Part shown: piece after piece, positions 3,379-38,115 of the stretch
Layout of the letters: each line of letters starts with the position of its first letter
How positions within the stretch are numbered: position 1 is the stretch's first letter
Source of the DNA: Macrostomum lignano
Taxonomy: Eukaryota
Direction: 5' to 3'
Assembly: GCA_002269645.1 (NCBI GenBank)
Contig: NIVC01004680.1
Location: 1-38,297 of the forward strand
Length of the DNA stretch: 38,297 nucleotides
Made by a program: the position numbers and the translations under genes
Notes under the pieces: generated by a model
What the model was told of the DNA's origin: nothing
What the model saw: only the letters and a program-made list of their open reading frames with translations
Database searches by the model: none

Positions 3379-3942
3379 GGTCAGACCACAGACTCCTCCT
3401 GATCTGCGACTTGCGGCTCCGCGACCAGCTCTACCGACCACCAAAGCAGCGGCCACGGCACTACTATCGCGCACTGTTGGACACCTGCGTGAAACGTCAA
3501 TTCGCGGGTGCCTTCGTCGCCACGCTTGGAGACCAGCGCGAGGCGGAGTATTCCGAGACGTGGACGCTGACGGATACGCTAGAGCGGCAGCTGGACTCGG
3601 CGCACTCAGGGCTGCTCCGTGCGGCCTTTCGAGCTGACGAGAGCGTCGGGACCGAGGCCCTGTACGATCGGGCCAAGCTGCAGCGCCCGTCCACCATCAT
3701 GCGCCGGCGGCGACTTCAACTGGCAAACCACGTGATCCGGGCCGAGGGCTACTGCCCCCAACCTGTTCAGGACGTCCTGCTGCTCACCTTGCAGGGTCCC
3801 TTCAGGCGGGGTCAGGCCCGAACCCGTCGATTCGTGGACTGCCTGCTGTGCGACGCTGGGGTGCCCGACACTGCCAACGGAGCGGACTTTGTTCGTTCCC
3901 AGGCTCTGCGGCGCGCCATCTGACGCGCCCTGCTAGCTAGCT
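3375..3942 (+). mobile_element. Internally deleted RTE-like non-LTR retrotransposon relic
   Basis: In-frame SDHRLL (end of APE endonuclease) at 3381, then YSETWTLTDTLERQLDSAHSGLLRAAF...MRRRRLQLANHVIR...RGQARTRRFVD, the typical RTE post-RT C-terminus; stop at 3923; short (CTAG)n tail. Confidence 0.75.
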
Positions 3943-8329: not shown

Positions 8330-8973
8330 CTAGCGGTGCGATCTCGCAGACTCCAGGCTCACCTGCAGCTCCCAGGGATCTTCTTCATCATCGCTGTCGG
8401 ACCCGGTGGTGGTGTACTGCCCGCTGTCCACCCGGACGTCTTGTAGGCGGATCTCCGCCACTGCGGGCGCCATCTCGCCGGCGATGCCGCAACGACCAGC
8501 GTCCGGAGCATCGACGGCGTCGGCGTTGTTTTCTACAACGTCAACGACAAGGGCTTCTTCAGCCTTACCGACGTCGGGCGAATCGGCATCGGCGACGACC
8601 TCCTGCGGCGACTCCTCCTCGACATAGAGCTGGCGCTGCAGAATTGAGTTCCGCTTGCCCTGCCGCTGCCCCGACGGCCGGCCGTTCATCGTTGGTCGCT
8701 CGGCATCAGGCGACGATGGCGTCGAGTTGCCGCCCTTGTCGACAGGCACCGCTGTCGAGGCAGCGGTGGAGGCTGCGGTGTTAGCAGCGTCCTCCACGAT
8801 GGTGTCCAGCCCAGAGGACTGTCGGGAGGTGCTCGGCGGGGTGCCGAGGTTGTTGGTGAGGGCGCTGAGCGAGCGGCGGTGCTGCGCCCCGGCGATGCCG
8901 CCAAAGATGCCGGCGGACATGGCGGCCATGGACTTCAGGGCGTTGTTGGACTGGCGCTTGCTGATGTTTACGA
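8330..8973 (-). CDS. HVCN1: Hv terminal exon, low-complexity C-terminal tail
   Basis: Pyrimidine-rich acceptor ccctcccgcccacacag|TC completes Phe; VNISKRQSNNALKS runs into ORF 8330..8929 and TAG at 8332-8330; GC-rich codons. Confidence 0.75.
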
Positions 8974-11900
8974 CTGTGTGGGCGGGAGGGACGGCAGAGG
9001 GTTTCTAGTTGAACTATTTCTCGGAAACCAATGCCTAATATTCAATGATGAGATTCTTGGAAATCATTTTCTTATATAGTATGTCGTAGAAACCGATGCT
9101 TTAGTTGCGACGAACCCTTGGAAACAATGATGTAGTTTTCCTAGAAACTAATCCCGTAGTTCTCTTAGAAACAACTAATGTAGTTTTCTCAGAAACCAGT
9201 GCTTTAGAATTCCTAGAAGAATTGTTATTACTCGTAGATTCCCAGACACTTGGCTGCAGGGTGGTCCGTAGACACAGTGGTTAAGCGTGGGTCGCCCATT
9301 CCGCTAGATCCCAGACGTAGAGACACAGAAGATGATCTCCATTACCGAATCACTTGAAATCTTTGCTACTTTCCGTAAAAAAAGTTCTCTTCGCTCATCC
9401 TTGTATTTAGATATTAAGTTAGCTTAGACTAGAAAATGGAATGTCTGACTCAATAATTCCCGCCTGCGTTCTGCAGTCCGCAACACGTGGCCCATCTAAT
9501 GAACTTCTCGCGTCTGCTCACGCTGAAGCCCCCCCCCCAACTATCTGGCTGAGGGTCTGCGTGCGCTGCGAAGTGCAGCGGAAGAGACGAAGAAAGAGCG
9601 ACCTCTCAGCTCAGGACTCGAGCCCCCGGGGGCGCTTGGGATTCCGATGCTCCCCAAACCCCCACTGGATTCCCGCCAATAGACGGGACAAAAAGCGCTC
9701 AGGCGGCCACTGAGGCCTCCTTGACAGACAGGCGGCCTTCGCGGCGCAGGAAGCTGGCGACGACTGCTCGCGGACTTTTGGCTCGCGCGCGCGCCCCCAC
9801 TTCAGAATTCTATCCGCCTGCCTGCTCCAGGAGCTGCTACCGGCTGCCACTTGAAAGCCATTTATCATCTTCTTGACGACCAGAAAGGACGGACGGACGG
9901 CCGCCGCCGGAAGGAAAGCCCGCAGTCTGGCCGTGGGGCGAGGCGGCTGCACTTTTCACTGGGAACTCCATCAACTGGTGCTACGAAGAGCGCTGAGAGG
10001 GGGGCTGTCCCTCTTCACTTCTCTCTCTCTCTTTGTCACCCTTGCAGCCCCTCTTCTTCTTTTCACTCTGGCTGTGGATCTCCATTTCCACATATCCCTA
10101 ACACGCATTCGCTCCCCATCTCAGTCTCCCCATCATCTCAGTTTCCTCACTTCTGACACGCTGGAGATTGACGTTAAAAAATAGAATTCACAGCTCAGGT
10201 GAGGCAACTCACACCGCGGCTTGCAGTTGGCAATCTGCTCCTCCCCGCCGCCCAGTTCTCTGCAGAGCTCCTCCAGGAACAGGATGTGCTTCTGAAAGTG
10301 AACAGCGAGATTGTGGTTGGCGCTCTTGCTGGCAGCTGCTTCTCTGCTCGAGTTATCCATCATGCGCGCCGCCTCGACTCTCGGGCCCTAATTGATCCCC
10401 GGCCGCCTGTCCCGCCCCGGCTAATCCCCTACTGCTGCCAGGCCGCGAGATCATTCCGCTTCTCAACTTTTGCTACTAGGGGCGGCATAGGGAGACTGAG
10501 TAGTTAATTACCCCAGCCTGTTTGCCCGGGGAATTCGGGGCGCGCTGTTTGCAGACGCATTTCTGGTACAGAATTCCTGCCTCATGTTGCGACAGCCATT
10601 CTGCCCCCCCCTCAGTCCAATCTGAGCTCCCTGCCCTGTGCGGCTCGTGCTTTCTGTCAATAGGCAGCTGGCAGCCCTAAGTAGTATTTGACTTTGAAAC
10701 TCCCCCTGCTTTTATGGCACCTCCTGCAGGTCGCGCTCCGTCTCCAGGGTGTCACACTTCATCTCGGACATTCGCCTGGCTCGCTTCTGCAGCTGGATTC
10801 TGAACTCGCCACGCTGCTTCTCGTGCATCATCAGGCCTGCGGACGGTGTTGCGGCTTTGTTTTAACACGGGGGCTTGAGGGCCCGAAGTCTATGGCCAGC
10901 CCTGCTGCCGGGGCTTGGGGGCCCGAAGTCTATGGCCAGCCCTGCTGCCGGGGCTTGGGGGCCCGAAGTCTATGGCCAGCCCTGCTGCCGGGTTTTGGGA
11001 GACCGAATTCTATGGCCAGCCCTGCTGCCGGGGTTTGGGGGCCCGAAGTCTATAGCCAGCCCTGCTGCCGGGGTTTGGGGGCCCGAAGTCTATGGCCAGC
11101 CCTGCTGCCGGGGTTTGGGGGCCCGAAGTCTATGGCCAGCCCTGCTGCCGGGGTTTGAAGGCGCAAAGTCTATAGCCAGCCCTGCTGCCGGGGTTTGAAG
11201 GCCCGAAGTCTATGGCCAGCCCTGCTGCCGGGATTTGAAGGCCCGAAGTCTATGGCCAACCCATAGACTTCGGGCCGGGGCTTGCTGCCGGGGCTGCCGG
11301 GGCTTGGGGGCCCGAAGTCTATGGCCAGCCCTGCTGCCGGGGTTTGGGGGCCCGAAGTCTATGGCCAGCCCTGCTGCCGGGGCTTGGGGGCCCGAAGTCT
11401 ATGGCCAGCCCTGCTGCCGACAAAAACAGGTTTCGTTCTGGTATAAACAGATTGTAAATTCGCTCTCTTGTATTCGAAATTTTAAACACAGAATTTATAG
11501 GAGACTGGCAATACAAGACAAAGCTGACAGGGAATTACTTATTCAATTTGATGCTATATCAGCGGGTGTACTTTATTGTGACACAGTGTGATACGCAGGA
11601 CCCAGTTAACACCGTGTGGCCACTAAAGGTGTAAGATCATGGTTTAGCTCTAACTCGCCTTGTCAATCTCAAATGCTGCTCAGTGAATAGTGCACCAAAG
11701 TCGCTCAGGCCCTGACTAAAAGAAACGTGAATGGAATGCGAGCCTCGAGAGACACTGGAGAAAGGAAGTGCCAGAGATTGGCTGGGGCAAATTGGGCTGA
11801 GATGCAATTTGTAGTCGGGCCGCAGCTCCCCAGCCCACCGGTGAAATTTTCTGAATTCAAGCGTGCAAACGAGGTACAGGCGAGCTGAGGACATGCCCGA

Positions 11901-14900
11901 TGCGGCTTCAACTGAGAGGCAGAGGCAAAGGCCAGAAAATGTCGATAACTGGCTGGCACAGATGACTGCTCGCATTTGCCCACGGGTGGGTCTCGTTGCG
12001 TTTCTTCTCTATCCGTTGCCGAGCAGTTCCCCCCCCCGCCGCATCGGAAAGGTACGGGATGGGGGCCTTCTACTTCTCCATCGACTAGTCCATTCCCCGA
12101 TGAAAAGTCCCCGATCCTTCGATCTGTGCCGACCCGTGCAGTCGAGTAACTCGTAAAAAAAGGGCAGCCTCAGCCAAGACTCATTACTGGCTTGTTTTTA
12201 ATCACTCGCTAATAATTTCCAATCTCTTCTGCCGTGAAAAAAATAAAGTCAACTGATTCCACGGATAGAGATGAATACTGCGGTAACCCTCTATGCATGC
12301 AGATTTATCAGTTTAACTGTATAGGCAGACAATAAACAGGTCGAATAACCAACTTCAGCCCTTCTCATACTGGTCAATTTAATCAAGTGTACAGAGGTAG
12401 TGCGAGTGTACACGTAGACAGAGACCCTTTTGTAAATAATTGAGGGCGTTGGCCTGGAATGCCGAAATTGCAGTGCATAGGGAAATCTAATTCAGAAGAT
12501 TAATTTCTGATGAGGTACTCAGTTACAAACCCGCTAGTTTACATTTAAATTCATTTTAATAACTTTTACTAAAGCTTGTTAATATCTGCGCACTTCTGCA
12601 TCTGCGAGTGATTTCGACTTGTGGGATTAGAAAGTCGCTGAACTTTTATGTAAGCACTATTATTAATGGCCTTACTGATAATGCGAATATGGAGATCCTC
12701 TGCTGGGGCAGGAGAAGAAATGTGAGACTGATGGGGGCCTAGCATCTATAGCCATATTGGCAGCTGGGGGGGGGCTCAGAAGTGCTGAATACGAACTCCT
12801 GCTATTGTCCGTGCTCTGCAAGTGTCGGGAGAACCCAGATGTCTGGCTTTTCCTCTCCCAGCAGCGAGCATCCTGCACAGAACCCGTCACGCACCATTGA
12901 TGACGCGAACAATTCGCCAGAGCAGGAACAGGACCATGACTGACACTTCCGTGGACTCCAGCTTCACGAAGACGATGTCCGCCACAAATGAGATCATGAT
13001 CACCACTGCGTCGACGATCTGAAATCGAAATTTTAATAACAATTCGATTAATTATAAGCCCGCGCGTTGATCCGCAAAATTACCTGTTTGAGATCTTAGG
13101 CACACTTTGCAAACACAGGAGAAGTTGATAACAAGTTTTCTCTGTACTGCAGAGAAGTTCATCTAGTTTTCTAGTAACCAGAACTGCATGCATTGCTTTA
13201 GATATTCGCAAGTTTCTGGGGGTCTCCCTAATGTACCTCCTTAATTTTTATTGTGTTTTGTTTCAAAGAAAGTTCAGAAGAGTTCTGCAAGATACGCCAG
13301 TCGATTCAAGTTCAAGTATTTCAAGAAGGCATTTCACACAATCGCCAGGTCAATGGAGCTCCGAGCGTCAATGTGTCGGAGCGGCTGGTCTGTCTCTACC
13401 ATCATGGCGATACACAATCACTCGAAAGCTGCTGTTTCGACATCGGACGGCCTATCAGACTTCTTCAAGACGTCCTCTGGGATGCTCCAGGAGAACGCGG
13501 ATTGACGCCAATATCGCCCCTCCTGTCCTCAGCCGTTGAGGACGCCCAGCGATAGCACTCTATCGTCATGCCAGGCTGGTCCGTCCAAGGGACCTGTTGC
13601 GCTGTCGGCGATTCCAATTGAAAGGTCACCTCATCAGCAGTGTCCACAGTCGCAGTGTCCACAGACGGTGCAGGAAGTGCTGCTGCTAACGCTGCAGGCA
13701 CCCTACCGAAGCGCACTCGGCGTTTCGTCGACTGCCTGCTGGCTGATGCCGGCGCCCCGGATTCGGTCGGTTGCACGGCTTACGTTTGTGTCCAGGCCCA
13801 GAGATAAACCCGGTGCCGCTGCTCTCAATAAGGACTTGAACAACAACGCATTGAGCTTTTTGTTGTTGTTTAACGAATTTCATCTCTTGTGTGAAAAAAA
13901 CTAGACATTTTGAATTTCTCCTCATAAAATGACGCCCTCTCAATGGACTGAATTACAAGACTCCCTTCCCAATTCGCAAAATCTCGTTTCCTTGTGGGCT
14001 CGAAACCATCAGGAAAAGATAAACTCTTAAAATGTATCTAACGGCAAAGTGCGCAAAAGACGCAGCCGCCTCGGTTGTGCGCCTAAAGTTCGCAGCCGAG
14101 CCGAGAAATGCGGAACAAGAATGTCCTGCCTGGTGAATATTTCATCAGCATGCCAGTCCCCTGGCCGCTGGGCCCGAGTCAAATTCCAGACAGGGCGTCC
14201 CTGTTCCTGCACTGCCAGCGTCTTCTCCGCGCCTCATCCTACTGCGCAATAATTGATTGACTCATCCCAGATCTGGCTGTCTCGGTCCCGGCGGATTACC
14301 GACCAGGAAAGAGCGCATTTGTGCAGTGCTTTGTACAGCGCGCTGTGCAACAGCAAGGCTCGCATTAATGTAGCTTCAGTTTCCGTGCGAATCGAAGGGC
14401 GCTCTTTGCAGCTTCATTGAGCTGGCTGATTCGAAGTATCTGTGTGGAAGATCTTTTCAGATCCTGGAAATTCGCACTTAACTGTTTGTGCACTGAAGCA
14501 TTCATTTTATTGAAGAATGAGCCTCGACGAAATTAAGCATCGAATGGTTTCCAACTTTTGCGTTATCGGAATTGCCATGGTTGGGCTCGATCGGTGGCTT
14601 AACTCTCGAGTGTTCATTCGGTCCCACTGTTAATTTGTGAACCCTTGTCTAAGTGTACGAGCGTACTGTTAATATTTTTGTTCCAAATTTTTGTAGGTAG
14701 AAGATAATAATACACGAACTTGCAGCATCAATCTAGTGGACGTCGCAAGAGCAGGACGTATTGAAATTCTGTGAAGCACCGAGTGAATCTGAACACGATC
14801 TCCTGTTCTGGACCCTGATATTGACCTCTTGGGCGAAGTCAGACGGGCACTCGGCGTTTCGTCTACTGCTTTCTGGCTGACACCCAGTTTCCAAAAGCTA

Positions 14901-17770
14901 CCCTTTGATCTAAAAAGAGTCACTTGAGCTGTTTTTATCGTCGATAATGACTCAGACGTGCTCCATTCGCAGATGGACCGGTTATCGGTGCGCATTCGCG
15001 AGGGCACAAATACACCCCGGGTGACGAGCGGCCTCCGGTTATCAAACTTGCCGTCGAAAGCAGATTTCCTAATTCGAAAATCATGATGCAAATACCTTTG
15101 AAAACATTTCCTCCGCCTCTAATATTAGTCAATATTGCTGGCTTTGAAGTCGGCTCGAGTTTCCTCGTAGTGAAATTGGAGGCCTGTTTTTGCGGCCTGA
15201 ATCCGCGTAGGCAAGGGGTTGGCTGGATGGGAATATGTTCGGTTTGTCAGGCCGCTTATTAATTCACTGCAACGGCTTCGAAGCCCTTCTGGACCAAAAT
15301 AGACAGTCCATGCGAGTTGGAACGCGTGCTGCTGACGGCTTTCAGGTACGAAATGGACAATAATATTTTTCGACAGCATATTTTCAAGGCGTTTTTTTAA
15401 TCTATTTTTTATGCTTCTTCGGTTCAGTGGCACCTGGATAGTTGTCTCAGTTTCTCTTTCTGACATCTTGTTAATAAGGGCAGCAGGAGTCAACCTTGCA
15501 GTTTGGAAATTAATTACACACTAAGCAGTGCGCCTGCGGAGCCTTTGATTTTACCTGCAGCTTCAAACTCGAAGTCCAAGTTCAACTAATCTTTTAGATG
15601 CCCTTCTTCGACGAACTCAATGTCAAAGCGAGTACTGAGAATTTGAGCTATCAATTTTGCAAGACACAAGTCTGATTCAGATTCCATTGTACAATTATCT
15701 ACTCACCTCGAACTTCTCTCGCACAAAGTTCCGACCGAGGCAGACAATTTTCAGCGCCACCTCGAGGACGAACAGGCCGAGAATCCCAATGCTGACGAAG
15801 TGCAGCACGGCTGAGACGTCGTGCAGTACCTTGGCGTGGCTGAACTCCTGCTGGAAGTTGGCGAACGCCGAAGTCGCCGACGAATACGACCGGTTGGTGT
15901 CATCCCAGGCGGCGGCGCCGGCGTCGCTGGCGACGTGTCGACGCAACCGCGGCTGGTGGGACCCGGCTACCGACGGACTGGGCGAGCTCGCTCCGGGCTG
16001 CCCGCCAGCCACCGAGGAGGTCACGTTGCATGAGATGCTGGAGTTCTGACTCAGCGTCAGGAGCACGTCGGCCATGTTGGTCACCAGGCGCTCGGCAAAC
16101 TGAGGCGACGACGTCAGCTCCGGACTGAAGGCCGGCAGCAGGAGGCCTCGCTCGCCGAGCTGCTTGGCGAATGTTCGATTGACGAATCCGGCAGTCTGCA
16201 CGAAGGCGTCCTCGAGCTCCTGCTTCTCGCCTGCAATTCGCAAATTTGTGAGGCGCCGGTGTTTCGGATTCAGGCAATTTTGAGCTTGAGAAGTTTGGAG
16301 TTGTGAAACCGACCCAGCGAAATAGCATCGAGACAAAGTGACCGACTCGCTTTGGGTGGATCCCTAGGATAGCAGCTCCATTTCCGATTGGAGTCTCCTA
16401 CCATAGGGTTTTTTGCATCAACTGATAGCTCGTATCGGGATGCAGTGCTCGGTGCCACAATCCATTGGTTACACAGCCACATGGACTCGAGCTTCAGCTC
16501 TGCTAACTCTCATCTGTTTTCTACATGTCTTCATCCCTGACTAATCCTTTGGGATAACTAAAATCAACAGCATTGAGCTTAAATTCCTGAGATTCCGAGA
16601 ACCCTTTAGAAAATCCCTAAACTGCGTAAGCAGTTTCCATCATCAACAAAATTCTCCGCTATTCGGCCATTTTCGAATATTCCGTCCTTGCAGCCTCTTC
16701 CATCATCTTCCTAAGCCCCTTTCAGGTAAATCTCAAATTCCAAAGATTTCCACAAACCCATGCAGATTAAACCTGGATGCGGTGTGCATCCCGGATGGAT
16801 GCATCGGACTCCAGGAACGATGGATGAATAAATATGGAGGCTTCAATCGGAGAATAAACCCCACCCAGCATATCCTGACAGCCCACAGCCAGGCACTGAG
16901 CAAATCCTGACAGCCCACAGCCAGGCACTGAGCAAATCCTGACAGCCCACAGCCAGGCACTGAGCAAATCCTGACAGCCCACAGCCAGGCACTGAGCAAA
17001 TCCTGACAGCCCACAGCCAGGCACTGAGCAAATCCTGACAGCCCACAGCCAGGCACTGAGCAAATCCTGACAGCCCACAGCCAGGCACTGAGCAAATCCT
17101 GACAGCCCACAGCCAGGCACTGAGCAAATCCTGACAGCCCACAGCCAGGCACTGAGCAAATCCTGACAGCCCACAGCCAGGCACTGAGCAAATCCTGACA
17201 GCCCACAGTCAGGCACTGAGCAAATCCTGACAGCCCACAGCCAGGCACTGAGCAAATCCTGACAGCCCACAGCCAGGCACTGAGCAAATCCTGACAGCCC
17301 ACAGCCAGGCACTCAGCATATCCTGACAGCCCACAGTCAGGCACTGAGCAAATCCTGACAGCCCACAGTCAGGCACTCAGCATATCCTGACACCCCACAG
17401 ACGGCACCTATAGTCCTGGCTACTTACTGGTGATGGCCTTGATCTCCAGGATGATCTCGGCGATCACAATGACGGCGTCGATGAGCACGAAGGCGCACAG
17501 GATGATCTGCACTACGTTGGACCGGATTGCCAGCAGCCGCTGGCGGTGGCGCGCCTGAGGCTTTGGCCGCCATTTGCCGTTGCAGCTGCCGCCGCCGACC
17601 GAGGCGTGGACGGCAACGTCGGCGACAGGAGGCTGAGCAGCGACGATGAAGCTGACGAGGAGGAGGCGGCGGCAAACAGCAGCGGCGGCCTGGCTGGTGG
17701 CCCGCCGCCAAGGGCTCCTCCGTCGTCGCATTCATCGGATTCGTCACCGGATGACCGGTGGCGATAGCGG
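8330..17770 (-). CDS. HVCN1: Voltage-gated proton channel (Hv family, Hv3-like), spliced core: join(17770..17428,16230..15707,13018..12895,10836..10721,10291..10213,8973..8330)
   Basis: Four TM helices with Hv motifs: S1 ILCAFVLIDAVIVIAEIILE (Asp filter), S2 LHFVSIGILGLFVLEVALK, S3 FEIVDAVVIMISFVADIV, S4 VLFLLWRIVRVING, followed by a coiled coil. All junctions are GT-AG with matching phases (1,0,1,0,1). From the in-frame ATG at 17731 the join is 1791 nt (596 aa + stop). Family-level call by motif recognition, not orthology. Confidence 0.9.
9005..9230. repeat. Highly degenerate short tandem repeat
   Basis: Recurrent (T/C)AGAAAC/GGAAAC and TAGTT motifs at irregular ~25-50-bp spacing. Confidence 0.4.
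10213..10291 (-). CDS. HVCN1: Hv exon, distal coiled coil
   Basis: Acceptor ttcactttcag|AAG; KHILFLEELCRELGGGEEQIANCKPR; donor CGG T|GTGAGT (phase 1). Confidence 0.8.
10721..10836 (-). CDS. HVCN1: Hv exon, proximal C-terminal coiled coil
   Basis: Acceptor ccgtccgcag|GC completes Gly; LMMHEKQRGEFRIQLQKRARRMSEMKCDTLETERDLQE; weak donor GAG|GTGCCA at phase 0 fits the next exon. Confidence 0.8.
10871..11419. repeat. 40-bp minisatellite (GGGCTTGGGGGCCCGAAGTCTATGGCCAGCCCTGCTGCCG), ~13 copies
   Basis: Direct period 40; explains ORFs 10688..11591. Confidence 0.97.
12895..13018 (-). CDS. HVCN1: Hv exon encoding S3-S4
   Basis: Acceptor tttcgatttcag|ATC, donor AAT G|GTGCGT; IVDAVVIMISFVADIVFVKLESTEVSVMVLFLLWRIVRVIN (41 codons +1). 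Not present in the supplied ORF track. Confidence 0.92.
13310..13815 (+). mobile_element. Degenerate RTE-like relic: RT fragment plus C-terminal fragment, inside an Hv intron on the opposite strand
   Basis: YFKKAFHTIAR...STSDGLSDFFKTSSGMLQ resembles the RT motifs DFKKAFD...SGVLQGD; downstream CPQTVQEVLLLTLQAPYR and cggcgtttcgtcgactgcctgctg match the 3780-3870 region. Confidence 0.65.
14840..14885 (+). mobile_element. Tiny fragment of the same RTE-like C-terminus
   Basis: gcactcggcgtttcgtctactgctttctggctgacacc closely matches gcactcggcgtttcgtcgactgcctgctggctgatgcc at ~13714. Confidence 0.5.
15707..16230 (-). CDS. HVCN1: Hv exon encoding the long S1-S2 loop and S2
   Basis: Acceptor aattgcag|GC, donor TTC GAG|GTGAGT; 524 nt = 2+174 codons; ends HDVSAVLHFVSIGILGLFVLEVALKIVCLGRNFVREKFE. 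Confidence 0.9.
16868..17400. repeat. 32-bp minisatellite (CCTGACAGCCCACAGCCAGGCACTGAGCAAAT), ~16 copies
   Basis: Direct period 32. Confidence 0.97.
17428..17770 (-). CDS. HVCN1: Hv exon encoding the pre-S1 region and S1 (apparent 1-nt frameshift inside)
   Basis: Candidate acceptor ...tttgggcgcag|C at 17771/17770; donor ACC A|GTAAGT at 17428/17427. 3' part reads RQRLLAIRSNVVQIILCAFVLIDAVIVIAEIILEIKAIT. 5' boundary less certain than the donor. Confidence 0.8.
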
Positions 17771-17794: not shown

Positions 17795-18345
17795 ACTGCT
17801 TCTGTCTGCTTCTGTCTGCTTCTGTCTGCTTCTGTCTGCTTCTGTCTGCTTCTGTCTGCTTCTGTCTGCTTCTGTCTGCTTCTGTCTGCTTCTGTCTGCT
17901 TCTGTCTGCTTCTGTCTGCTTCTGTCTGCTTCTGTCTGCTTCTGTCTGCTTCTGTCTGCTTCTGTCTGCTTCTGTCTGCTTCTGTCTGCTTCTGTCTGCT
18001 TCTGTCTGCTTCTGTCTGCTTCTGTCTGCTTCTGTCTGCTTCTGTCTGCTTCTGTCTGCTTCTGTCTGCTTCTGTCTGCTTCTGTCTGCTTCTGTCTGCT
18101 TCTGTCTGCTTCTGTCTGCTTCTGTCTGCTTCTGTCTGCTTCTGTCTGCTTCTGTCTGCTTCTGTCTGCTTCTGTCTGCTTCTGTCTGCTTCTGTCTGCT
18201 TCTGTCTGCTTCTGTCTGCTTCTGTCTGCTTCTGTCTGCTTCTGTCTGCTTCTGTCTGCTTCTGTCTGCTTCTGTCTGCTTCTGTCTGCTTCTGTCTGCT
18301 TCTGTCTGCTTCTGTCTGCTTCTGTCTGCTTCTGTCTGCTTCTCT
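17795..18345. repeat. 10-bp satellite (CTGCTTCTGT)n, ~55 copies
   Basis: Near-perfect array. Confidence 0.98.
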
Positions 18346-19704
18346 GCTGCTTTCTATGCTTCTAAATCCTTCGGGGTCCAAGTTTGTCAGCTCAGATAAG
18401 GCCGAGTCTTAGGAAGGCCGCACTGCTCAGTAGTCGGACTCTTTTGATCCGGGTCAAGCAATTCCCAACCCCCCCCCCCTTTCAGCCTCAGCCGGTGCCA
18501 ACCCGCGGAGAGCATCAGGGAAGGCAGGGAGCGAGTTGTCCGGAATGCCTGCTCCCATTGGCCCAGTGAGATTGGATGCTCAGCTGAGGAGTTCCAGACG
18601 GAGGCTTGAGCAGGGAAGGGACCATGAGCTGCTTGTTGATTAAAATAGGTTGTTTGTTAAACCGCTTCGATAGCTTTTGAATCCAAGTCGCTTTATTTGG
18701 TGCTTTCGATCGAAAGGATTTGGTATTTAAATCCCTCAATTGCGACATTCAGTGGTCAATTTTTTAACTCAGACACAGATTTGTCCTCTTTTAGCTCGAG
18801 ATTGTGCCGAACTGAGAGAAAGGCCTGAGGGAGCAGAACTAAGGTCAGGCCAGCTTCCCAGACTAATTACCGCTGGGTTCCCCCGGCTCTCGGGAGAGTC
18901 TCGAACTCAGACTAAGTGCGGCCGCTCTGTGACAGCTCGCGTCTCCATCAAGGCATCAAAGGCTCCGGGAGGGGGGGAGCTGGAGAGGCGGCCTCTCTGT
19001 GTGCCCCTGGATTCCTGGGAATTCCCAGCTAGCAGCGAAGGTAGCGAAGACGAGGCGGCGTTGTCACGGAAACGAGGACTCGAGCAGGGAGCTCCGGAGG
19101 CGGAGTCTGGGGCGGCGGCGGCTGTTTTTGGCATGGAATTTTCCAGTTTGCGCGCAACAGACGCGGTGGGGGGGGGCATTTTTGTTCATTCTGCTACTGC
19201 GGAGGAGGGGGCAGGGAGGACAAAGAGGCGGGTTTTCCCCGCTCCCCAATCATTGATTGATCCCTTTGCGAAAGCGAGCTCGGCAAGTGAGCTGCTCACA
19301 GTCACCGCCCTTTATATTCAGAAGAAGTGATGAAGGAAAGGCAATAAAAAGCACAAGCAGCTGTGAGGTCACTGCTCAGATAGGGAGAGTGAAAGTGAGT
19401 TTATTGTATTGGATTATGATTATTATTATCGCACACGCATTGTCCCGGGCACAAAGGCCGATAAAAAAGCAGCCGATTCCTCTTTTGAGCACAAAGGCGA
19501 GCGGACGGAAAATCCAGGATTAAAACAAAAGGTTTGGCAGGGGAAACTCCGGCAGGGGAGGCTTCGATCGCGAATTAAAAAGCTGGGCGGAACTGCCGCC
19601 TTCCGGTTGCTATGGGATATTTTTAGCTGCCTTGCCATACGAGCTCGAAATTCGATCAATTGGTAGACGGCCGATCCGCTCAGTAGCCGAATAATGTGTT
19701 TTAA

Positions 19705-20492: not shown

Positions 20493-21379
20493 TTGGATTG
20501 CTAATCTAGCCAACCATGGATTTGCTAATACAATGGATTGCTAATCTAGCCAATCATGGATTAGCTAATACAATGGATTGCTAATCTAGCCAATCATGGA
20601 TTAGCTAATACATTGGATTGCTAATCTAGCCAACCATGGATTTGCTAATACAATGGATTGCTAATCTAGCCAATCATGGATTTGCTAATACAATGGATTG
20701 CTAATCTAGCCAATCATGGATTAGCTAATACAATGGATTGCTAATCTAGCCAATCATGGATTTGCTAATACAATGGATTGCTAATCTAGCCAATCATGGA
20801 TTTGCTAATACAATGGATTGCTAATCTAGCCAATCATGGATTAGCTAATACAATGGATTGCTAATCTAGCCAATCATGGATTTGCTAATACAATGGATTG
20901 CTAATCTAGCCAATCATGGATTTGCTAATACAATGGATTGCTAATCTAGCCAATCATGGATTTGCTAATACAATGGATTGCTAATCTAGCCAATCATGGA
21001 TTAGCTAATACATTGGATTGCTAATCTAGCCAATCATCGATTAGCTAATACAATGGATTGCTAATCTAGCCAATCATGGATTTGCTAATACAATGGATTG
21101 CTAATCTAGCCAATCATGGATTTGCTAATACAATGGATTGCTAATCTAGCCAATCATGGATTTGCTAATACAATGGATTGCTAATCTAGCCAATCATGGA
21201 TTTGCTAATACAATGGATTGCTAATCTAGCCAATCATGGATTAGCTAATACAATGGATTGCTAATCTAGCCAATCATGGATTAGCTAATACAATGGATTG
21301 CTAATCTAGCCAACCATGGATTAGCTAATACAATAGATCGCTAATCTAGCCAATCATGGATTAGCTAATACAATGGATT
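20493..21379. repeat. 40-bp minisatellite (GGATTGCTAATCTAGCCAATCATGGATTWGCTAATACAAT), ~22 copies, made of two related ~20-bp halves
   Basis: Direct period 40. Confidence 0.97.
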
Positions 21380-21416: not shown

Positions 21417-21542
21417 GACTTTTTTCTCCGCTTCGTATTCACGGAGCCGATTTCGCTCTGCAGGATGGCCAAGTCAATGTTGTCCTTCTGCAGCTGCTTG
21501 ATGAACTTTTTGTTGTTCATCCAGCCGAACTGGTAGGAGTAC
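21417..21542 (-). CDS. Upstream phase 2-2 coding exon, probably part of the Hv N-terminus
   Basis: Acceptor gcccgcag|G, donor AAG TC|GTGAGT; YSYQFGWMNNKKFIKQLQKDNIDLAILQSEIGSVNTKRRKK. Splicing to 17770 gives ...KRRKKSRYRHRSSGDESDECDD. Confidence 0.7.
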
Positions 21543-21670
21543 CTGCGGGCCGGTGACAGCTTGACATTCAAATGTACCTTCTTTGCTTCAGAATGCGAAT
21601 CGTTGAAATTTTGATTCTTTATGTCCTGCTTTCGGCTTGGATTTGGTTTGCTTGTGTTATGAATCATGCT

Positions 21671-22000
21671 GATAACCAGCACTGTACATTGCGTCTATAG
21701 ATAACCAGCACTGTACATTGCGTCTATAGATAACCAGCACTGTACATTGCGTCTATAGATAACCAGCACTGTACATTGTGTCCATAGATGACTAGCACTG
21801 TACATTGCGTCTATAGATAACCAGCACATTGTGTCCATAGATGACTAGCACTGTACATTGCGTCTATAGATAACCAGCACTGTACATTGTGTCCATAGAT
21901 GACTAGCACTGTACATTGCGTCTATAGATAACCAGCACATTGTGTCCATAGATGACTAGCACTGTACATTGTGTCTATTATGTCTATAGATAAGCAGCAC
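21671..22000. repeat. 29-bp minisatellite (GATAACCAGCACTGTACATTGCGTCTATA) with variants
   Basis: Direct period 29, some shortened units. Confidence 0.92.
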
Positions 22001-23465: not shown

Positions 23466-25816
23466 AAGTCACTCAGCCACAGTCACTCAGACACAGTCAC
23501 TCAGCCACAGTCACTCAGACAGTCACTCAGCACAGTCACTCAGCCACAGTCACTCAGACAGTCACTCAGCCACAGTCACTCAGACACAGTCACTCAGACA
23601 CAGTCACTCAGCACAGTCACTCAGACAGTCACTCAGACAGTCACTCAGACACAGTCACTCAGCCAGTCACTCAGACAGTCACTCAGCCACAGTCACTCAG
23701 ACAGTCACTCAGCCGCAGTCACTCAAACACAGTCACTCAGACAGTCACTCAGCCGCAGTCACTCAGACACAGTCACTCAGACAGTCACTCAGATAGTCAC
23801 TCAGACATAGTCACTCAGCCACAGTCACTCAGACAGTCACTCAGACAGTCACTCAGACACAGTCATTCAGACACAGTCACTCAGCCGCAGTCACTCAGCC
23901 ACAGTCACTCAGACACAGTCACTCAGACACAGTCACTCAGCCACAGTCACTCAGCCACAGTCACTCAGACAGTCACTCAGACACAGTCACTCAGCCAGTC
24001 ACTCAGACAGTCACTCAGCTACAGTCACTCAGACAGTCACTCAGCCGCAGTCACTCAAACACAGTCACTCAGACAGTCACTCAGATAGTCACTCAGACAC
24101 AGTCACTCAGACAGTCACTCAGACAGTCACTCAGCTACAGTCACTCAGACAGTCACTCAGACAGTCACTCAGACAGTCACTCAGACATAGTCACTCAGCC
24201 ACAGTCACTCAGACAGGCACTCAGCTACAGTCACTCAGGCAGTCACTCAGCCACAGTCACTCAGACAGTCACTCAGACAGTCACTCAGATAGTCACTCAG
24301 ACATAGTCACTCAGCCACAGTCACTCAGACAGTCACTCAGACAGTCACTCAGACACAGTCACTCAGCCGCAGTCACTCAAAAACAGTCACTCAGACAGTC
24401 ACTCAGACACAATCACTCAGCCGCAGTCACTCAGACACAGTCACTCAGCCGCAGTCACTCAAACACAGTCACTCAGACAGTCACTCAGACACAATCACTC
24501 AGCCGCAGTCACTCAGACACAGTCACTCAGCCGCAGTCACTCAGACACAGTCACTCAGCCGCAGTCACTCAAACACAGTCACTCAGACAGTCACTCAGAC
24601 ACAATCACTCAGCCGCAGTCACTCAGACACAATCACTCAGCCGCAGTCACTCAGACACAATCACTCAGCCGCAGTCACTCAGACACAGTCACTCAGACGC
24701 AGTCACTCAAACACAGTCACTCAGACAGTCACTCAGACACAATCACTCAGCCGCAGTCACTCAGACACAATCACTCAGCCGCAGTCACTCAGACACAGTC
24801 ACTCAGCCGCAGTCACTCAAACACAGTCACTCAGACAGTCACTCAGACACAATCACTCAGCCACAGTCACTCAGACACAGTCACTCAGCCGCAGTCACTC
24901 AGACAGTCACTCAGCCGCAGTCACTCAAACACAGTCACTCAGCCGCAGTCACTCAAACACAGTCACTCAGACAGTCACTCAGACACAGTCACTCAGCCGC
25001 AGTCACTCAAACACAGTCACTCAGACAGTCACTCAGACACAATCACTCAGACACAATCACTCAGCCACAGTCACTCAGACACAGTCACTCAGACACAGTC
25101 ACTCAGCCGCAGTCACTCAAACACAGTTACTCAGACAGTCACTCAGACACAGTCACTCAGCCGCAGTCACTCAAACACAGTTACTCAGACAGTCACTCAG
25201 ACACAGTCACTCAGACGCAGTCACTCAAACACAGTCACTCAGACAGTCACTCAGACACAATCACTCAGACACAATCACTCAGCCACAGTCACTCAGACAC
25301 AGTCACTCAGACACAGTCACTCAGCCGCAGTCACTCAAACACAGTTACTCAGACAGTCACTCAGACACAGTCACTCAGCCGCAGTCACTCAAACACAGTT
25401 ACTCAGACAGTCACTCAGACACAGTCACTCAGCCGCAGTCACTCAAACACAGTCACTCAGACACAGTCACTCAGACACAGTCACTCAGCCGCAGTCACTC
25501 AGACACAGTCACTCAGACAGTCACTCAGACACAGTCACTCAGACAGTCACTCAAACACAGTTACTCAGACAGTCACTCAGACACAGTCACTCAGCCGCAG
25601 TCACTCAGACAGTCACTCAGACACAGTCACTCAGACGCAGTCACTCAGACAGTCACTCAGACACAGTCACTCAGCCGCAGTCACTCAAACACAGTTACTC
25701 ATACAGTCACTCAGACACAGTCACTCAGCCGCAGTCACTCAGACAGTCACTCAGACACAGTCACTCAGACACAGTCACTCAGACAGTCACTCAGACACAG
25801 TCACTCAGACACAGTC
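23466..25816. repeat. ~2.35-kb compound 11/13-bp satellite (CAGTCACTCAGA / CAGTCACTCAGCCG / CAGTCACTCAAACA)
   Basis: Direct; variant units recur in ordered blocks. Confidence 0.97.
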
Positions 25817-28636: not shown

Positions 28637-29213
<577 letters not shown>

Positions 29214-31530: not shown

Positions 31531-32280
31531 TATGGGGAGATAGGGAGATGGGGATATGGGGAGATGGGAATATGGGAATATGGGGATATGGGGACATGGG
31601 AATGTGGGGGGATGGGGAGATGGGAATATGGGAATATGGGGATATGGGGAGATGTGAGGATACGGAGATGGGAATATGGGAATATGGAGAGATGGGAATA
31701 TGGGGAGATAGGAATATGGGAATATGGGGATATGGGGGATGAGGAGATGGGGAGATGGGAATATGGGAGATAGGAATATGGGGAGATAGGAATATGGGAA
31801 TATGGGGAGATGGGAATATGGGGAGATAGGAATATGGGAATATGGGAATATTGGGGATGAGGAGATGGGGAGATGGGAATATGGGGAGATAGGAATATGG
31901 GAATATGGGGATATGGGGAGATGGGAATATGGGGATATGGGAATATGGGGAGATGGGAATATGGGGATATGGGGATATGGGAATATGGGGAGATGGGAAT
32001 ATGGGGATATGGGGAGATGGGAATATAGGGAGATGGGAATATGGGGAGATAGGAATATGGGAATATGGGGATATGGGGAGATGGGGAGATGGGAAGATGG
32101 GGAGATGGGAATATGGGGAGATGGGAATATGGGGAGATGGCAGATGGAAGATGGGGAGAAAGGGAGATGGGAAGATGGGGAGATGGCAGATGGGAAGATG
32201 GGGAGATGGGGAGATGGGAAGATGGGGAGATGGCAGATGGAAGATGGGGAGAAAGGGAGATGGGAAGATGGGGAGATGAG
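31531..32280. repeat. Purine/G-rich compound repeat (GGGAGAT/GGGAATAT/GGGGATAT)
   Basis: Direct; strongly strand-asymmetric with almost no C on +. Confidence 0.93.
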
Positions 32281-33104
32281 AGAATAGGGATCTGGGGGAT
32301 GGTAAGAAGAGGAGCTGGGAAGATGGGAATTAAGTACGTGAGAGATGCAGAGGTGCGCAGAGCACGGAGAGACAGGGCGGTGCGGAGGCGGCGGTCCGGG
32401 GGCAATTCTTGTATCTGATTAGCCGCTGGTCTGATTGACTCCGGCGGGATGCCGTGCACTGCAGCAAATGAATGGAGCGGGACGGAGGGCAAGGATGGCG
32501 GCGGCGGGGAGGGACGGAGGGCCCCTTGGGCTGCAGGAACAGAAAAGGAGATGATTTGGTGGGAGATGAGGCCCAGCTTCCCAACCCGGAAGAGCCACCC
32601 GGAGAACGGAGGCTCGGGGGGGGGGTCAAGCTTGGCTTCACAATGGAGTGGCTGGAGGGCCTCTCAGCTCGAATCAGCAGTCCGTTGCAACGCGGCTTGA
32701 GCTGGGGAGATGGGGCGAGAGGGGAAGGACGGGGCAGAGACTTTCACGGACTCCGCGGCTCCCCTAGTGAAAGAAAGTTCTCATAGGTTCTCATTATTTC
32801 CTAAACCAGATCGAATTGCCAGATCACAGCACGGTCACAAGAATTTGCTTTTAGAAGGAAGAGCTGAATTAGGTGGCAGCGAAGTTTGCAACTTTTTCGT
32901 AAGAATTTTTCAGGAAAATCGAGCGGCAATGGGTGTCGGATTTCCAAGATCGATGGGCGGCGTGTGGGAGCGCTGGCTGCTTTCTCACGCCTTGAGTGAG
33001 ATTACAAGCGGCTGTGGCAGCCCGCGAGCTAGAATGAGATTTGATGGCTCCCGGAAGGATCGGGACAGCTTCTGAAGAATTGGGAGGTCAGGGTGGAGTT
33101 CAGG

Positions 33105-33730
33105 GTGGTCCCTGAATGATTGGGTGATCCCTGAAGGATCAGGCGGTCCCTGAAGGATTGGGCGGTCACTGAAGTATTGGGTGGTCCCTGAAGTTATTGG
33201 GCGGTCCTTAAAGGATTGGGCGGCCCCTGAAGGATTGGGCGGTCCTTGAAGGATTGGGCGGCCCCTGAAGGATTGGGCGGTCCTTGAAGGATTGGGTGGT
33301 CCTTAAAGGATTGGGTTGTCCCTGAAGGATCGGGTTGTACCTGAAAGATCGGGCGGACCCTGAAGGATCGGGCGGTCCCTAAAGGATAAAACGGTTCCTG
33401 AAGGATGAGGCGGTTGCTGAAGGATTGAACGGCCCCTGTAGGATTGGGTGGTCCTTGAAGGATTGGTTTGCCCTGAAGGATCGGGTTGTCCCTGAAAGAT
33501 CAGGCGGACCCTGAAGGATCGGGCGGTCCCTAAAGGATAAAACGGTCCCTGAAGGATTGGGCGGTCCCTGAAGGATTGGGAGGTCCTTGAAGGGTCGATG
33601 CGGTCCCTGAAGAAAATTCCCTGAAGGATCGGCGGTCTCTGAAGGGTCGGTGCGGTCCCTGAAGAAAATTCCCTGAAGGATCGGGCGGTCTCTGAAGGGT
33701 CGGTGCGGTCCCTGAAGAAAATTCCCTGAA
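33105..33730. repeat. 19-bp degenerate minisatellite (CCCTGAAGGATTGGGCGGT) with higher-order blocks
   Basis: Direct period ~19. Confidence 0.9.
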
Positions 33731-34278
33731 GCCCCGTTGCCAAAAACTCCCCAAGCAGGAGCGGCTCCACTTGTCCCCTAACCGAGGCAGCAGCAGCAAC
33801 AACTATCCCCCCTCCCATATCTTGCCGATATCTGCATCTGCACAAATATTAATATTTTGTCGTTGCCAGGGGAAATTCCGGCACCCGACCCCGGCTGAGG
33901 AAAGTCACTTGAATTCCCAGTAATTTTTGCATTCAGTAAAATACGCTTAGAGGCAGACAGACGGGCGATGAGGAAGTTGAGGGAATTGAGGAATTTTCTC
34001 CCACGGCCTGCCTGGCTGCCAGCAATAAATGGGAAATGAAGAGGCAGGCAGAAAATTACGATAAAGGGACGAGTCTTCTGCTTTTTGTGGTCCAGTTGCT
34101 TAATATCTGAGTCTGTCACTCCGTCAGTTATTCGTAGTTTCCCACTTATCAACAACAAGCCGCTCCTGACCTTCCATGACCTTCCCTGATGCCGAATGTT
34201 GACGAGTTCCGAGGATGTTTTAAATCTAAGCTACTCAACGCCCCTCAGCGCCCCTCCATTCCCAGCGGCCCTTCTCAC

Positions 34279-35469: not shown

Positions 35470-35786
35470 TGAACCTAAACTGACCCGTCTGACCTAAACT
35501 GACTCGTCTGACCTAAACTGACCCGTCTGACCTAAACTGACCCGTCTGACCTAAACTGACCCGCCTGACCTAAACTGACCGTCTGACCTAAACTGACCCG
35601 TCTGACCTAAACTGACCCGTCTGACCTAAACTGACCCGTCTGACCTAAACTGACGCGCCTGACCTAAACTGACCCGTCTGACCTAAACTGACCGCCTGAC
35701 CTAAACTGACCCGCCTGACCTAAACTGACCCGCCTGACCTAAACTGACCCGTCTGACCTAAACTGACCGGACTGAACCTAAACTGA
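35470..35786. repeat. 19-bp minisatellite (CTGACCTAAACTGACCCGT)
   Basis: Direct period 19. Confidence 0.95.
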
Positions 35787-36609: not shown

Positions 36610-37152
36610 AGAGCCTACCTGACACTCACTGCAGAGCCTACCTGACACTCACTTCAGAGCCTACCTGACACTCACTTCAGAGCCTACCTGACACTCACTG
36701 CAGAGAGCCTACCTGACACTCACTGCAGAGCCTACCTGACACTGCAGAGCCTACCTGACACTCACTGCAAAGCCTACCTGACACTCACTGCAGAGCCTAC
36801 CTGACACTCACTTCAGAGCCTACCTGACACTCACTGCAGAGAGCCTACCTGACACTCACTGCAGAGCCTACCTGACACTGCAGAGCCTACCTGACACTCA
36901 CTGCAGAGCCTACCTGACACTCACTGCAGAGCCTACCTGACACTCACTGCACAGCCTACCTGACTCTCATTGCACAGCCTACCTGACACTCACTGCAGAG
37001 CCTACCTGACACTCACTGCACAGCCTACCTGACTCTCATTGCACAGCCTACCTGACACTCATTGCACAGCCTACCTGACACTCATTGCACAGCCTACCTG
37101 ACACTCACTGCAGAGCCTACCTGACACTCACTGCAGAGCCTACCTGACACTC
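36610..37152. repeat. 23-bp minisatellite (GAGCCTACCTGACACTCACTGCA)
   Basis: Direct period 23. Confidence 0.95.
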
Positions 37153-37647: not shown

Positions 37648-37995
37648 CCGAATCCTGAGTCCCGAATCCTGAGTCCCGAATCCTGAGTCCCGAATCCTGA
37701 GTCCCGAATCCTGAGTCCCGAATCCTGAGTCCCGAATCCTGAGTCCCGAATCCTGAGTCCCGAATCCTGAGTCCCGAATCCTGAGTCCCGAATCCTGAGT
37801 CCCGAATCCTGAGTCCCGAATCCTGAGTCCCGAATCCTGAGTCCCGAATCCTGAGTCCCGAATCCTGAGTCCCGAATCCTGAGTCCCGAATCCTGAGTCC
37901 CGAATCCTGAGTCCCGAATCCTGAGTCCCGAATCCTGAGTCCCGAATCCTGAGTCCCCGAATCCTGAGTCCGAATCCTGAGTCCCGAATCCTGAG
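37648..37995. repeat. 14-bp satellite (AATCCTGAGTCCCG)n, ~24 copies
   Basis: Direct period 14. Confidence 0.97.
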
Positions 37996-38115
37996 TGTCA
38001 GGTTAATATAGTGTCAGGTGGATATAGTGTTAGGTGGATATAGTGTCAGATGGATATAGTGTCAGATGGATATACATGAGTGTCAGATAGATATAGTGTC
38101 AGATGGATAGAGTCA
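37996..38115. repeat. 16-bp repeat (GTGTCAGATGGATATA)n abutting the 14-bp array
   Basis: Direct period 16. Confidence 0.85.

Follow-up and report, generated by a model that had tools for sequence, protein, structure and literature searches.

Introduction

The systems closest to the gene analysed here are human Hv1 (hHv1) and the unconventional voltage-gated proton channels (Hv) of spiralians, in particular Aplysia AcHv3. The gene lies on the minus strand of a 38,297-nucleotide stretch of DNA from the flatworm Macrostomum lignano (contig NIVC01004680.1 of assembly GCA_002269645.1, positions 1 to 38,297; hereafter the window). In hHv1, the hydrophobic gasket is formed by V109, F150, V177 and V178 (PMC6754559). 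AcHv3 (P0046, XP_005094274, 980 amino acids (aa)) lacks the first arginine of the fourth transmembrane segment S4 (R1; R205 in hHv1), carries L429 and P430, and is proton-selective, leaky, weakly voltage-dependent and still Zn2+-sensitive (PMC10911540). Its authors consider proline-induced unwinding and a breach of the gasket as candidate causes of the leak, and state that S4 Arg-to-Ala mutants of Hv1 show no leak (PMC10911540). Hv3 channels are defined by the S4 motif xPWRxxR, a very large S1-S2 loop and large intracellular domains, and Hv3-like channels without the S4 proline are described from Annelida, Bryozoa and Nemertea (PMC10377628, section 2.1.4). For Platyhelminthes, the same review covers just two channels, both from Schistosoma and with long S3-S4 loops, and its supplement lists flatworm accessions with one Macrostomum transcript among them (PMC10377628). 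Three HVCN1-like transcripts are reported from the M. lignano transcriptome (PMC3447372).

An earlier reading of this DNA (the original prediction), which described the properties of AcHv3 correctly, had proposed an Hv3-type, possibly constitutively leaky proton channel with altered Zn2+ sensitivity in a non-molluscan lineage. The lineage is indeed non-molluscan. Our analysis suggests that the window probably contains an intact gene of an R1-less Hv branch with a large S1-S2 loop and a long C-terminus, the product of which would conduct protons through its own voltage-sensing domain (VSD).

The first S4 arginine is replaced by leucine

The exon that carries S4 and its key codons are as follows.

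12895 to 13018, minus strand: exon E3, encoding S3, the S3-S4 linker KLESTE and S4 (VLFLLWRIVRVING), bounded by GT-AG splice sites
12925 to 12923, minus strand: CTG codon, Leu at the position of hHv1 R205 (R1) in the HMMER and MAFFT register
12905 to 12919, minus strand: TGG CGA ATT GTT CGC, encoding W207, R208 (R2), I, V and R211 (R3)

The minus-strand translation of E3 is IVDAVVIMISFVADIVFVKLESTEVSVMVLFLLWRIVRVIN(G), preceded by the acceptor tttcag| with AG at 13020-13019 and followed by the phase-1 donor g|gtgcgt with GT at 12894-12893. Because both edges are splice sites, the interval to which the original prediction had assigned an S4 with Leu in place of the first Arg corresponds exactly to one exon. 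That assignment is borne out by alignment. In HMMER comparison with all PDB chains, the best matches were human Hv1 (5oqk, E 5.4e-17) and mouse Hv1 (3wkv, E 2.3e-16), with LLWRIVRVING aligned onto LRLWRVARIING, and the same register, with Leu at R1, was obtained in a 160-sequence MAFFT alignment. Position 206, directly before W207, is also Leu (CTC, 12922-12920), and R2 and R3 are the sole basic residues in S4, with no basic residue further upstream in the segment. A single transversion of the R1 codon to CGG would encode Arg. E3 was matched by tblastn with human Hv1 (E 1.2e-7) and with the M. lignano paralog P0002 (E 8.8e-22), VLFLLWRIVRVING recurs unchanged in P0001 (a model of the same gene) as well as in P0002 and P0284 (models of paralogs), and Leu occupies R1 in every flatworm ortholog. 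These homology matches, the identical S4 in the M. lignano models and the occurrence of Leu across flatworms show that the Leu codon is neither chance nor a sequencing error.

The voltage sensor is of the Hv family

The other hallmarks of Hv channels are intact, as originally predicted. On the same strand but in other exons, LIDAV (17485-17471), LHFVS (15805-15791) and LFVLE (15775-15761) align to D112, H140 and F150/E153, respectively. The Asp in VLIDAV is the acidic S1 selectivity residue of Hv channels, the counter-charges and the charge-transfer Phe are all present (E, E, F, E, K, E, D and D at the positions of E119, D123, F150, E153, K157, E171, D174 and D185), and W207, R208, R211 and N214 have their equivalents, with L at 205. 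The Hv S4 signature RxWRxxR is departed from in that R1 is Leu, with W, R2 and R3 kept (LLWRIVR); the same deviation is found in AcHv3, an accepted and functionally proven Hv. Thus, the pore-less four-helix VSD, with its S1 Asp, full S1-S3 counter-charges, intact gasket and two-arginine S4, has all features credited with Hv1 proton selectivity and gating, R1 excepted.

After the two Hv1 structures, the next PDB matches were far weaker (Cav domains, E 2e-4; Ci-VSP, E 0.025), and the Pfam Ion_trans match spans only profile positions 10-106 of 241. The architecture is VSD-only: S1 to S4 are followed by a coiled-coil-like helix and a low-complexity tail, without an S5-S6 pore, and the orthologs likewise have no pore.

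Such an architecture is also that of TMEM266 (HVRP1), and we weighed whether the protein could be a voltage sensor of this kind that does not conduct protons. Its long C-terminus and post-S4 L..LC..G motif are loosely reminiscent of TMEM266, some isoforms of the Lingula relative LOC106155662 carry the name "transmembrane protein 266" at NCBI, and E153 is lost in the parasitic flatworm orthologs. However, the TMEM266 sequences sampled carry Val at D112, Met at D185 and, at N214, Asp (six sequences) or Gln (hagfish P0179), where the window protein has Asp, Asp and Asn, and all of them keep R1. They form a separate clade that excludes the window, with a bootstrap of 1.0 in every column set, and AcHv3, which groups in the same clade as the window protein, conducts protons. 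This explanation is therefore very unlikely. TMEM266 membership itself was ruled out by the Asp at D112 and the separate TMEM266 clade. Grouping with Hv rather than with TMEM266 or VSP, on which the original prediction depended, is upheld by the S1 Asp, the tree and the ranking of PDB matches.

The R1-less state is shared across spiralian relatives

A word-indexed protein search found only the M. lignano fragments P0001 and P0002 as nearest proteins, both named "Voltage-gated hydrogen channel 1" in UniProt. Exhaustive searching of 1.84 billion representatives with HMMER returned 748 relatives, the top matches being flatworm proteins of 480-964 aa with L[LIV]WRxxR. These came from cestodes (Hymenolepis, Rodentolepis, Spirometra, Sparganum, Taenia, Echinococcus and Mesocestoides) and trematodes (Calicophoron, Clonorchis, Fasciola, Schistosoma mekongi and Heterobilharzia), followed by Owenia (annelid, P0014), Tubulanus (nemertean, P0020), Lingula LOC106155662 (brachiopod, P0021) and Bugula (bryozoan, P0026). 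All these named relatives have L or I at R1, then L, I, V or M, then WRxxRxxN.

In a neighbour-joining (NJ) tree of 138 sequences (135 trimmed VSD columns, 200 bootstraps), the window falls in an 11-member flatworm clade (bootstrap 0.945), which lies inside an 18-member proline-less clade (0.31). The latter lies inside a 57-member clade (0.385) that comprises exactly all R1-less sequences, AcHv3 included, and no others; the R1 column is Leu, Ile or Val in 57/57 members. The grouping is not a product of S4 itself: after removal of five S4 columns the R1-less set still clusters (Jaccard 0.98; flatworm clade bootstrap 0.955), as it does after removal of all columns from S4 onward (Jaccard 0.95; flatworm clade bootstrap 0.87). 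Moreover, the R1-less clade differs from the remaining Hv sequences, TMEM266 excluded, in architecture.

Length, median: R1-less 566 aa; other Hv 253.5 aa; window 596 aa (in the model that starts with the S1 exon)
S1-S2 loop, median: R1-less 138 aa; other Hv 17 aa; window 147 aa (measured from h125 to h140)
Post-S4 tail, median: R1-less 232 aa; other Hv 68 aa; window 280 aa

Judged from the tree and the R1 column, Leu at R1 appears to be a clade-wide ancestral state that is not peculiar to this gene, inherited from before flatworms diverged from annelids, nemerteans, brachiopods and molluscs. The window protein also agrees with the proline-less unconventional spiralian Hv channels in its large S1-S2 loop, large intracellular domains, lack of the S4 proline and non-molluscan origin.

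Two further observations concern these relatives. E153 is replaced in all parasitic flatworm orthologs (P0003-P0012), by C in trematodes and some cestodes and by Y, Q or T in others; among the flatworm members of the set it is kept only by the window protein and the paralog fragment P0002. For Lingula anatina LOC106155662 (P0021 cluster), the NCBI isoform names are split between "uncharacterized protein" and "transmembrane protein 266" and UniProt has Hv1. This protein carries Asp at D112, its S4 reads LMWR, and in the tree it falls in the clade of the window and outside that of TMEM266.

The S4 proline and the gasket separate the window protein from Hv3

In the NJ tree the protein lies with AcHv3 in the weakly supported R1-less clade (bootstrap 0.32-0.39 across column sets), and it might be a true functional Hv3-type channel, constitutively leaky and with almost no voltage dependence. 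The Leu at R1, corresponding to AcHv3 L429, and the large S1-S2 loop (about 133 aa with four N-x-S/T sequons) and long C-terminus (about 278 aa) speak for this reading; the two lengths depend on the gene model, which is supported here by P0285 and P0284. The residue before W207 speaks against it. The window has LLWR, not the LPWR of Hv3, and sits in the proline-less subclade (0.31), the 41 xPW sequences being the other part of the R1-less clade. The gasket points the same way. We classified 151 Hv-family sequences, with 87 R1-containing, 41 xPW and 24 proline-less R1-less (including the window).

Window: 109 V; 150 F; 177 V; 178 I
AcHv3: 109 T; 150 L
xPW class (41): 109 mostly N; 150 never F (L 32, M 7, I 1, V 1)
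R1-containing (87): 109 mostly V; 150 F in 87/87
Proline-less R1-less (24): 109 mostly V; 150 F in 17/24

Loss of the charge-transfer Phe thus appears, from these residue counts, to track the S4 proline and not the loss of R1. The AcHv3 authors suspect precisely the two features that the window protein does not have, proline unwinding and gasket breach, and the Arg-to-Ala Hv1 mutants they cite are not leaky. Therefore, the AcHv3 leak is not transferable to the window protein, and we consider an AcHv3-like function unlikely. Of the "Hv3-type" label in the original prediction, the common R1-less clade agrees with the NJ tree, though at low bootstrap, and the xPWRxxR proline does not hold; the possible leak is not inferable from R1 loss alone. 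The predicted absence of His from the S3-S4 loop is correct, the linker being KLESTE, but altered Zn2+ sensitivity does not follow from the missing H193: His occurs in this column only in human Hv1, P0059 and P0067 among the first 75 alignment rows, its absence is the norm outside vertebrates, and AcHv3, with Asn there, is still Zn2+-sensitive. Taken together, the residue and tree data place the window protein in the R1-less spiralian branch of the Hv family that includes Hv3, apparently as its proline-less, gasket-intact type.

Gene structure

The Hv gene has at least seven exons spread over at least 13 kb, from about 21541 to 8330, and the modelled protein has about 600-650 aa with a C-terminus of about 278-280 aa. 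Exons other than E3 were located using P0002, the sequences in the PMC10377628 supplement and, later, P0284 and P0285.

21417 to 21541 or longer, minus strand: E0, N-terminal cytoplasmic motif YSYQFGWMNNKKFIKQLQKDNIDLAILQSEI; donor TC|gtgagt, phase 2
17428 to 17651, minus strand: E1, pre-S1 segment and S1 (VQIILCAFVLIDAVIVIAEIILEIKAIT); donor cca|gtaagt, phase 1
15707 to 16230, minus strand: E2, extracellular S1-S2 loop and S2 (LHFVSIGILGLFVLEVALK: H140, F150, E153, K157); acceptor ttgcag|GC, phase 1; donor GAG|gtgagt
10721 to 10836, minus strand: E4, post-S4 helix (G)LMMHEKQRGEFRIQLQKRARRMSEMKCDTLETERDLQE; acceptor ccgcag|GC; donor GAG|gtgcca; colinear with P0284 and flatworm orthologs
10213 to 10291, minus strand: E5, KHILFLEELCRELGGGEEQIANCKPR, with the motif L..LC...G.....CKP conserved in the unconventional Hv clade
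8330 to 8973, minus strand: E6, long low-complexity intracellular C-terminus (FVNISKRQSNNALKSMAAMSAGIFGG...DPWELQ); in-frame stop 8332-8330

The Lingula N-terminus matches 21538-21449 (E 0.007) and the E0 motif also occurs in P0004, P0006, P0008, P0020 and P0021; an in-frame ATG at 21667 is a candidate start. A model in which the S1 exon came first (ATG 17731) was dropped because the ortholog-conserved N-terminal motif maps to 21541-21449. In E1, over whose S1 P0285 aligns at 80%, the Asp at the D112 position is encoded by GAC (17479-17477), and the 5' boundary may be either of two phase-2 acceptors, 17651 (cctcctcgtcag|C) or 17585 (ggcag|C). The E1/E2 junction ITS|EK is reproduced in the paralog model P0285 (ITSEKVALEGAFVKTASFVNETF). 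For E2, the acceptor at 15966 used by the fragment model P0001 was rejected, as the frame is open for 222 codons and P0285 carries ITS|EK. The post-S4 helix of E4 may be a coiled coil; in a crude heptad count over the first 75 post-S4 residues, at best 10/22 a/d positions are hydrophobic. Downstream, alignment to the paralog model P0284 and to ten orthologs is colinear and gap-free across the junctions from E3 to E6. As an alternative to the stop in E6, a consensus donor CAG|GTGAGC at 8363/8362 may splice onward. All modelled exons are open reading, and the six modelled junctions are all GT-AG and phase-compatible.

These exons bear on a further explanation, that this homeolog has decayed into a pseudogene, or that the Leu stems from an assembly error, in a polyploid, repeat-rich genome. 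The M. lignano genome is described as a hidden polyploid (PMC10468722), the introns are full of tandem repeats, the UniProt models of the gene are fragments, and the S4 of the paralog model P0285 is garbled (LLCAHCRVING). Nevertheless, every modelled exon is open with canonical splice sites, the S4 peptide is the same in P0001, P0002 and P0284 although the loops differ, and the Leu is common to all flatworm orthologs. Decay or error is thus extremely improbable, and an intact gene remains the preferred reading. The exon structure corrects the UniProt models of this locus, which are fragments or unspliced read-throughs. P0001, which differs from the window translation by a single residue outside its read-through end, is by this measure a near-identical model of the same gene, and its end RVINGA is an unspliced read-through of the E3 donor. 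P0002 is a paralog with 85% identity.

Two irregularities were observed among the paralog models. In P0285 (UniProt A0A1I8F401), the S4 aligned to window 12925-12905 is VLFLLCAHCRVING instead of VLFLLWRIVRVING: W207 and R2 are gone over four codons, after which the frame is restored, and P0002, the same paralog, has a normal S4. This would be explained by decay of the homeolog or by a compensated frameshift in a draft assembly. P0284 (1103 aa) and P0294 (800 aa) run past DPWELQ into a B-box-type/repeat protein, which may reflect two genes merged in the model or a genuine fusion. The window's consensus donor at 8363/8362 sits exactly where these two models extend, and no homologue of the paralog B-box tail was found in the window downstream of 8363.

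Repeats and other features of the window

The window is eukaryotic and repeat-rich, and tandem arrays lie nearly flush with Hv exon boundaries.

16867 to 17407: 32-bp unit x17, beginning 21 bp past the S1-exon donor
10870 to 11419: 40-bp unit x14, stopping 34 bp short of the post-S4 exon acceptor
17796 to 18363: 10-bp unit x57, just upstream of the S1 exon
20494 to 21379, 21671 to 21978, 23467 to 25816, 28637 to 29211, 31531 to 32327, 33103 to 33731, 35473 to 35786, 36610 to 37152 and 37648 to 37996: dense in mini- and microsatellites
3411 to 3923, plus strand: 170-aa open reading frame (ORF) (…VQDVLLLTLQGPFRRGQARTRRFVDCLLCDAGVPD…)
13555 to 13804, plus strand: degenerate, frameshifted copy of this ORF in the intron that separates the S2 exon from the S3-S4 exon (tblastn 1.6e-11)

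The satellites, among them (ATAG)x144 and a 14-bp unit x175 that spans 2.3 kb, produce pronounced GC/AT skews locally as well as numerous spurious long ORFs. The 170-aa ORF and its copy, for which no DNA-level match and no Pfam match were found, look like fragments of a dispersed element, possibly a retroelement tail. Pfam searches with seven other long window ORFs gave no matches.

Proposed function

As a proton channel, the protein would conduct through the VSD, and in the open state its S1 Asp would pair with R2/R3. Each subunit has two gating charges where Hv1 has three, which would make the voltage dependence shallower than in Hv1 and shift the threshold, and the post-S4 helix probably mediates dimerisation.

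Several points weigh against this assignment. hHv1 R205A moves the half-activation voltage (V0.5) positive and mouse R1Q moves it negative (PMC10377628), so the direction of the threshold shift is not predictable. The R1-less clade as a whole is weakly supported (bootstrap 0.32-0.39), in an NJ and not a maximum likelihood tree of 135 columns. Loss of E153 in the parasite orthologs hints that the clade may be functionally non-uniform. The gene model fixes neither the E1 acceptor, nor the start codon, nor the 3' end. In addition, no functional work on a flatworm Hv or on a proline-less member turned up in the literature searched.

Implications

AcHv3 combines three anomalies (no R1, an S4 proline and an altered gasket), of which the Macrostomum protein has only the first, making it a natural control for which of them causes the leak and weak voltage dependence. 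An ancient R1-less Hv paralog appears to be common to flatworms, from free-living Macrostomum to the parasites Schistosoma, Fasciola, Taenia and Echinococcus, and the Macrostomum sensor is essentially that of Hv1 but for R1 to Leu. One possibility, to which we give little credence, is that leak or low voltage dependence results from the loss of R1 alone. If this natural "R205L" channel were leaky or weakly voltage-dependent, then R1 loss, and not the proline or the gasket, would explain the AcHv3 phenotype, and a constitutive proton conductance, unlike that of host Hv1, would exist across parasitic flatworms. An R1-less channel is present in the medically important parasites Schistosoma, Fasciola, Clonorchis, Taenia and Echinococcus, where databases call it "Hv1", and free-living M. 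lignano is a tractable laboratory model for it. The proline-less class was already known from other spiralians (2023 review, PMC10377628); what is new is a better gene model and the explicit assignment of the flatworm channels to that class.

Comparison with known systems

Compared with canonical Hv1 (human HVCN1; PDB 5oqk and 3wkv), the window protein has the same VSD fold by sequence (E about 1e-16) and shares all counter-charges, the gasket, W207, R2, R3 and N214. In contrast, canonical Hv1 has R205, an S1-S2 loop of about 17 residues (h125-h140) and a C-terminus of about 60 aa, and vertebrate Hv1 has H193. TMEM266 (HVRP1, C15orf27) resembles the window protein in being VSD-only with a long C-terminus and in H140, F150, E153, W207, R2 and R3, but differs from it by Val at D112, Met at D185, mostly Asp at N214, a retained R1 and a separate clade.

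AcHv3 and the other molluscan Hv3 channels share with it Leu at R1, W207, R2, R3, D112, the large S1-S2 loop, the long C-terminus and the R1-less NJ clade. AcHv3 differs in its LPWR, T109 and L150, in a loop of 299 aa and a C-terminus of 535 aa, in a post-S4 sequence that is not conserved with the window, and in an overall identity of only 17% to the window model. The flatworm Hv proteins automatically named "Voltage-gated hydrogen channel 1" (in Hymenolepis, Rodentolepis, Spirometra, Taenia, Echinococcus, Clonorchis, Fasciola and Schistosoma mekongi) belong, like the window protein, to the proline-less unconventional spiralian class but have lost E153. The proline-less unconventional spiralian Hv channels correspond to the window protein in having L or I at R1, a residue other than proline next and then WRxxRxxN, in D112 and the mostly kept F150, in the long S1-S2 loop and C-terminus, and in the motifs KQRxEFRIxLQKRARR and L..LC...G.....CKP (post-S4) and F.KQL.KDNID (N-terminal).

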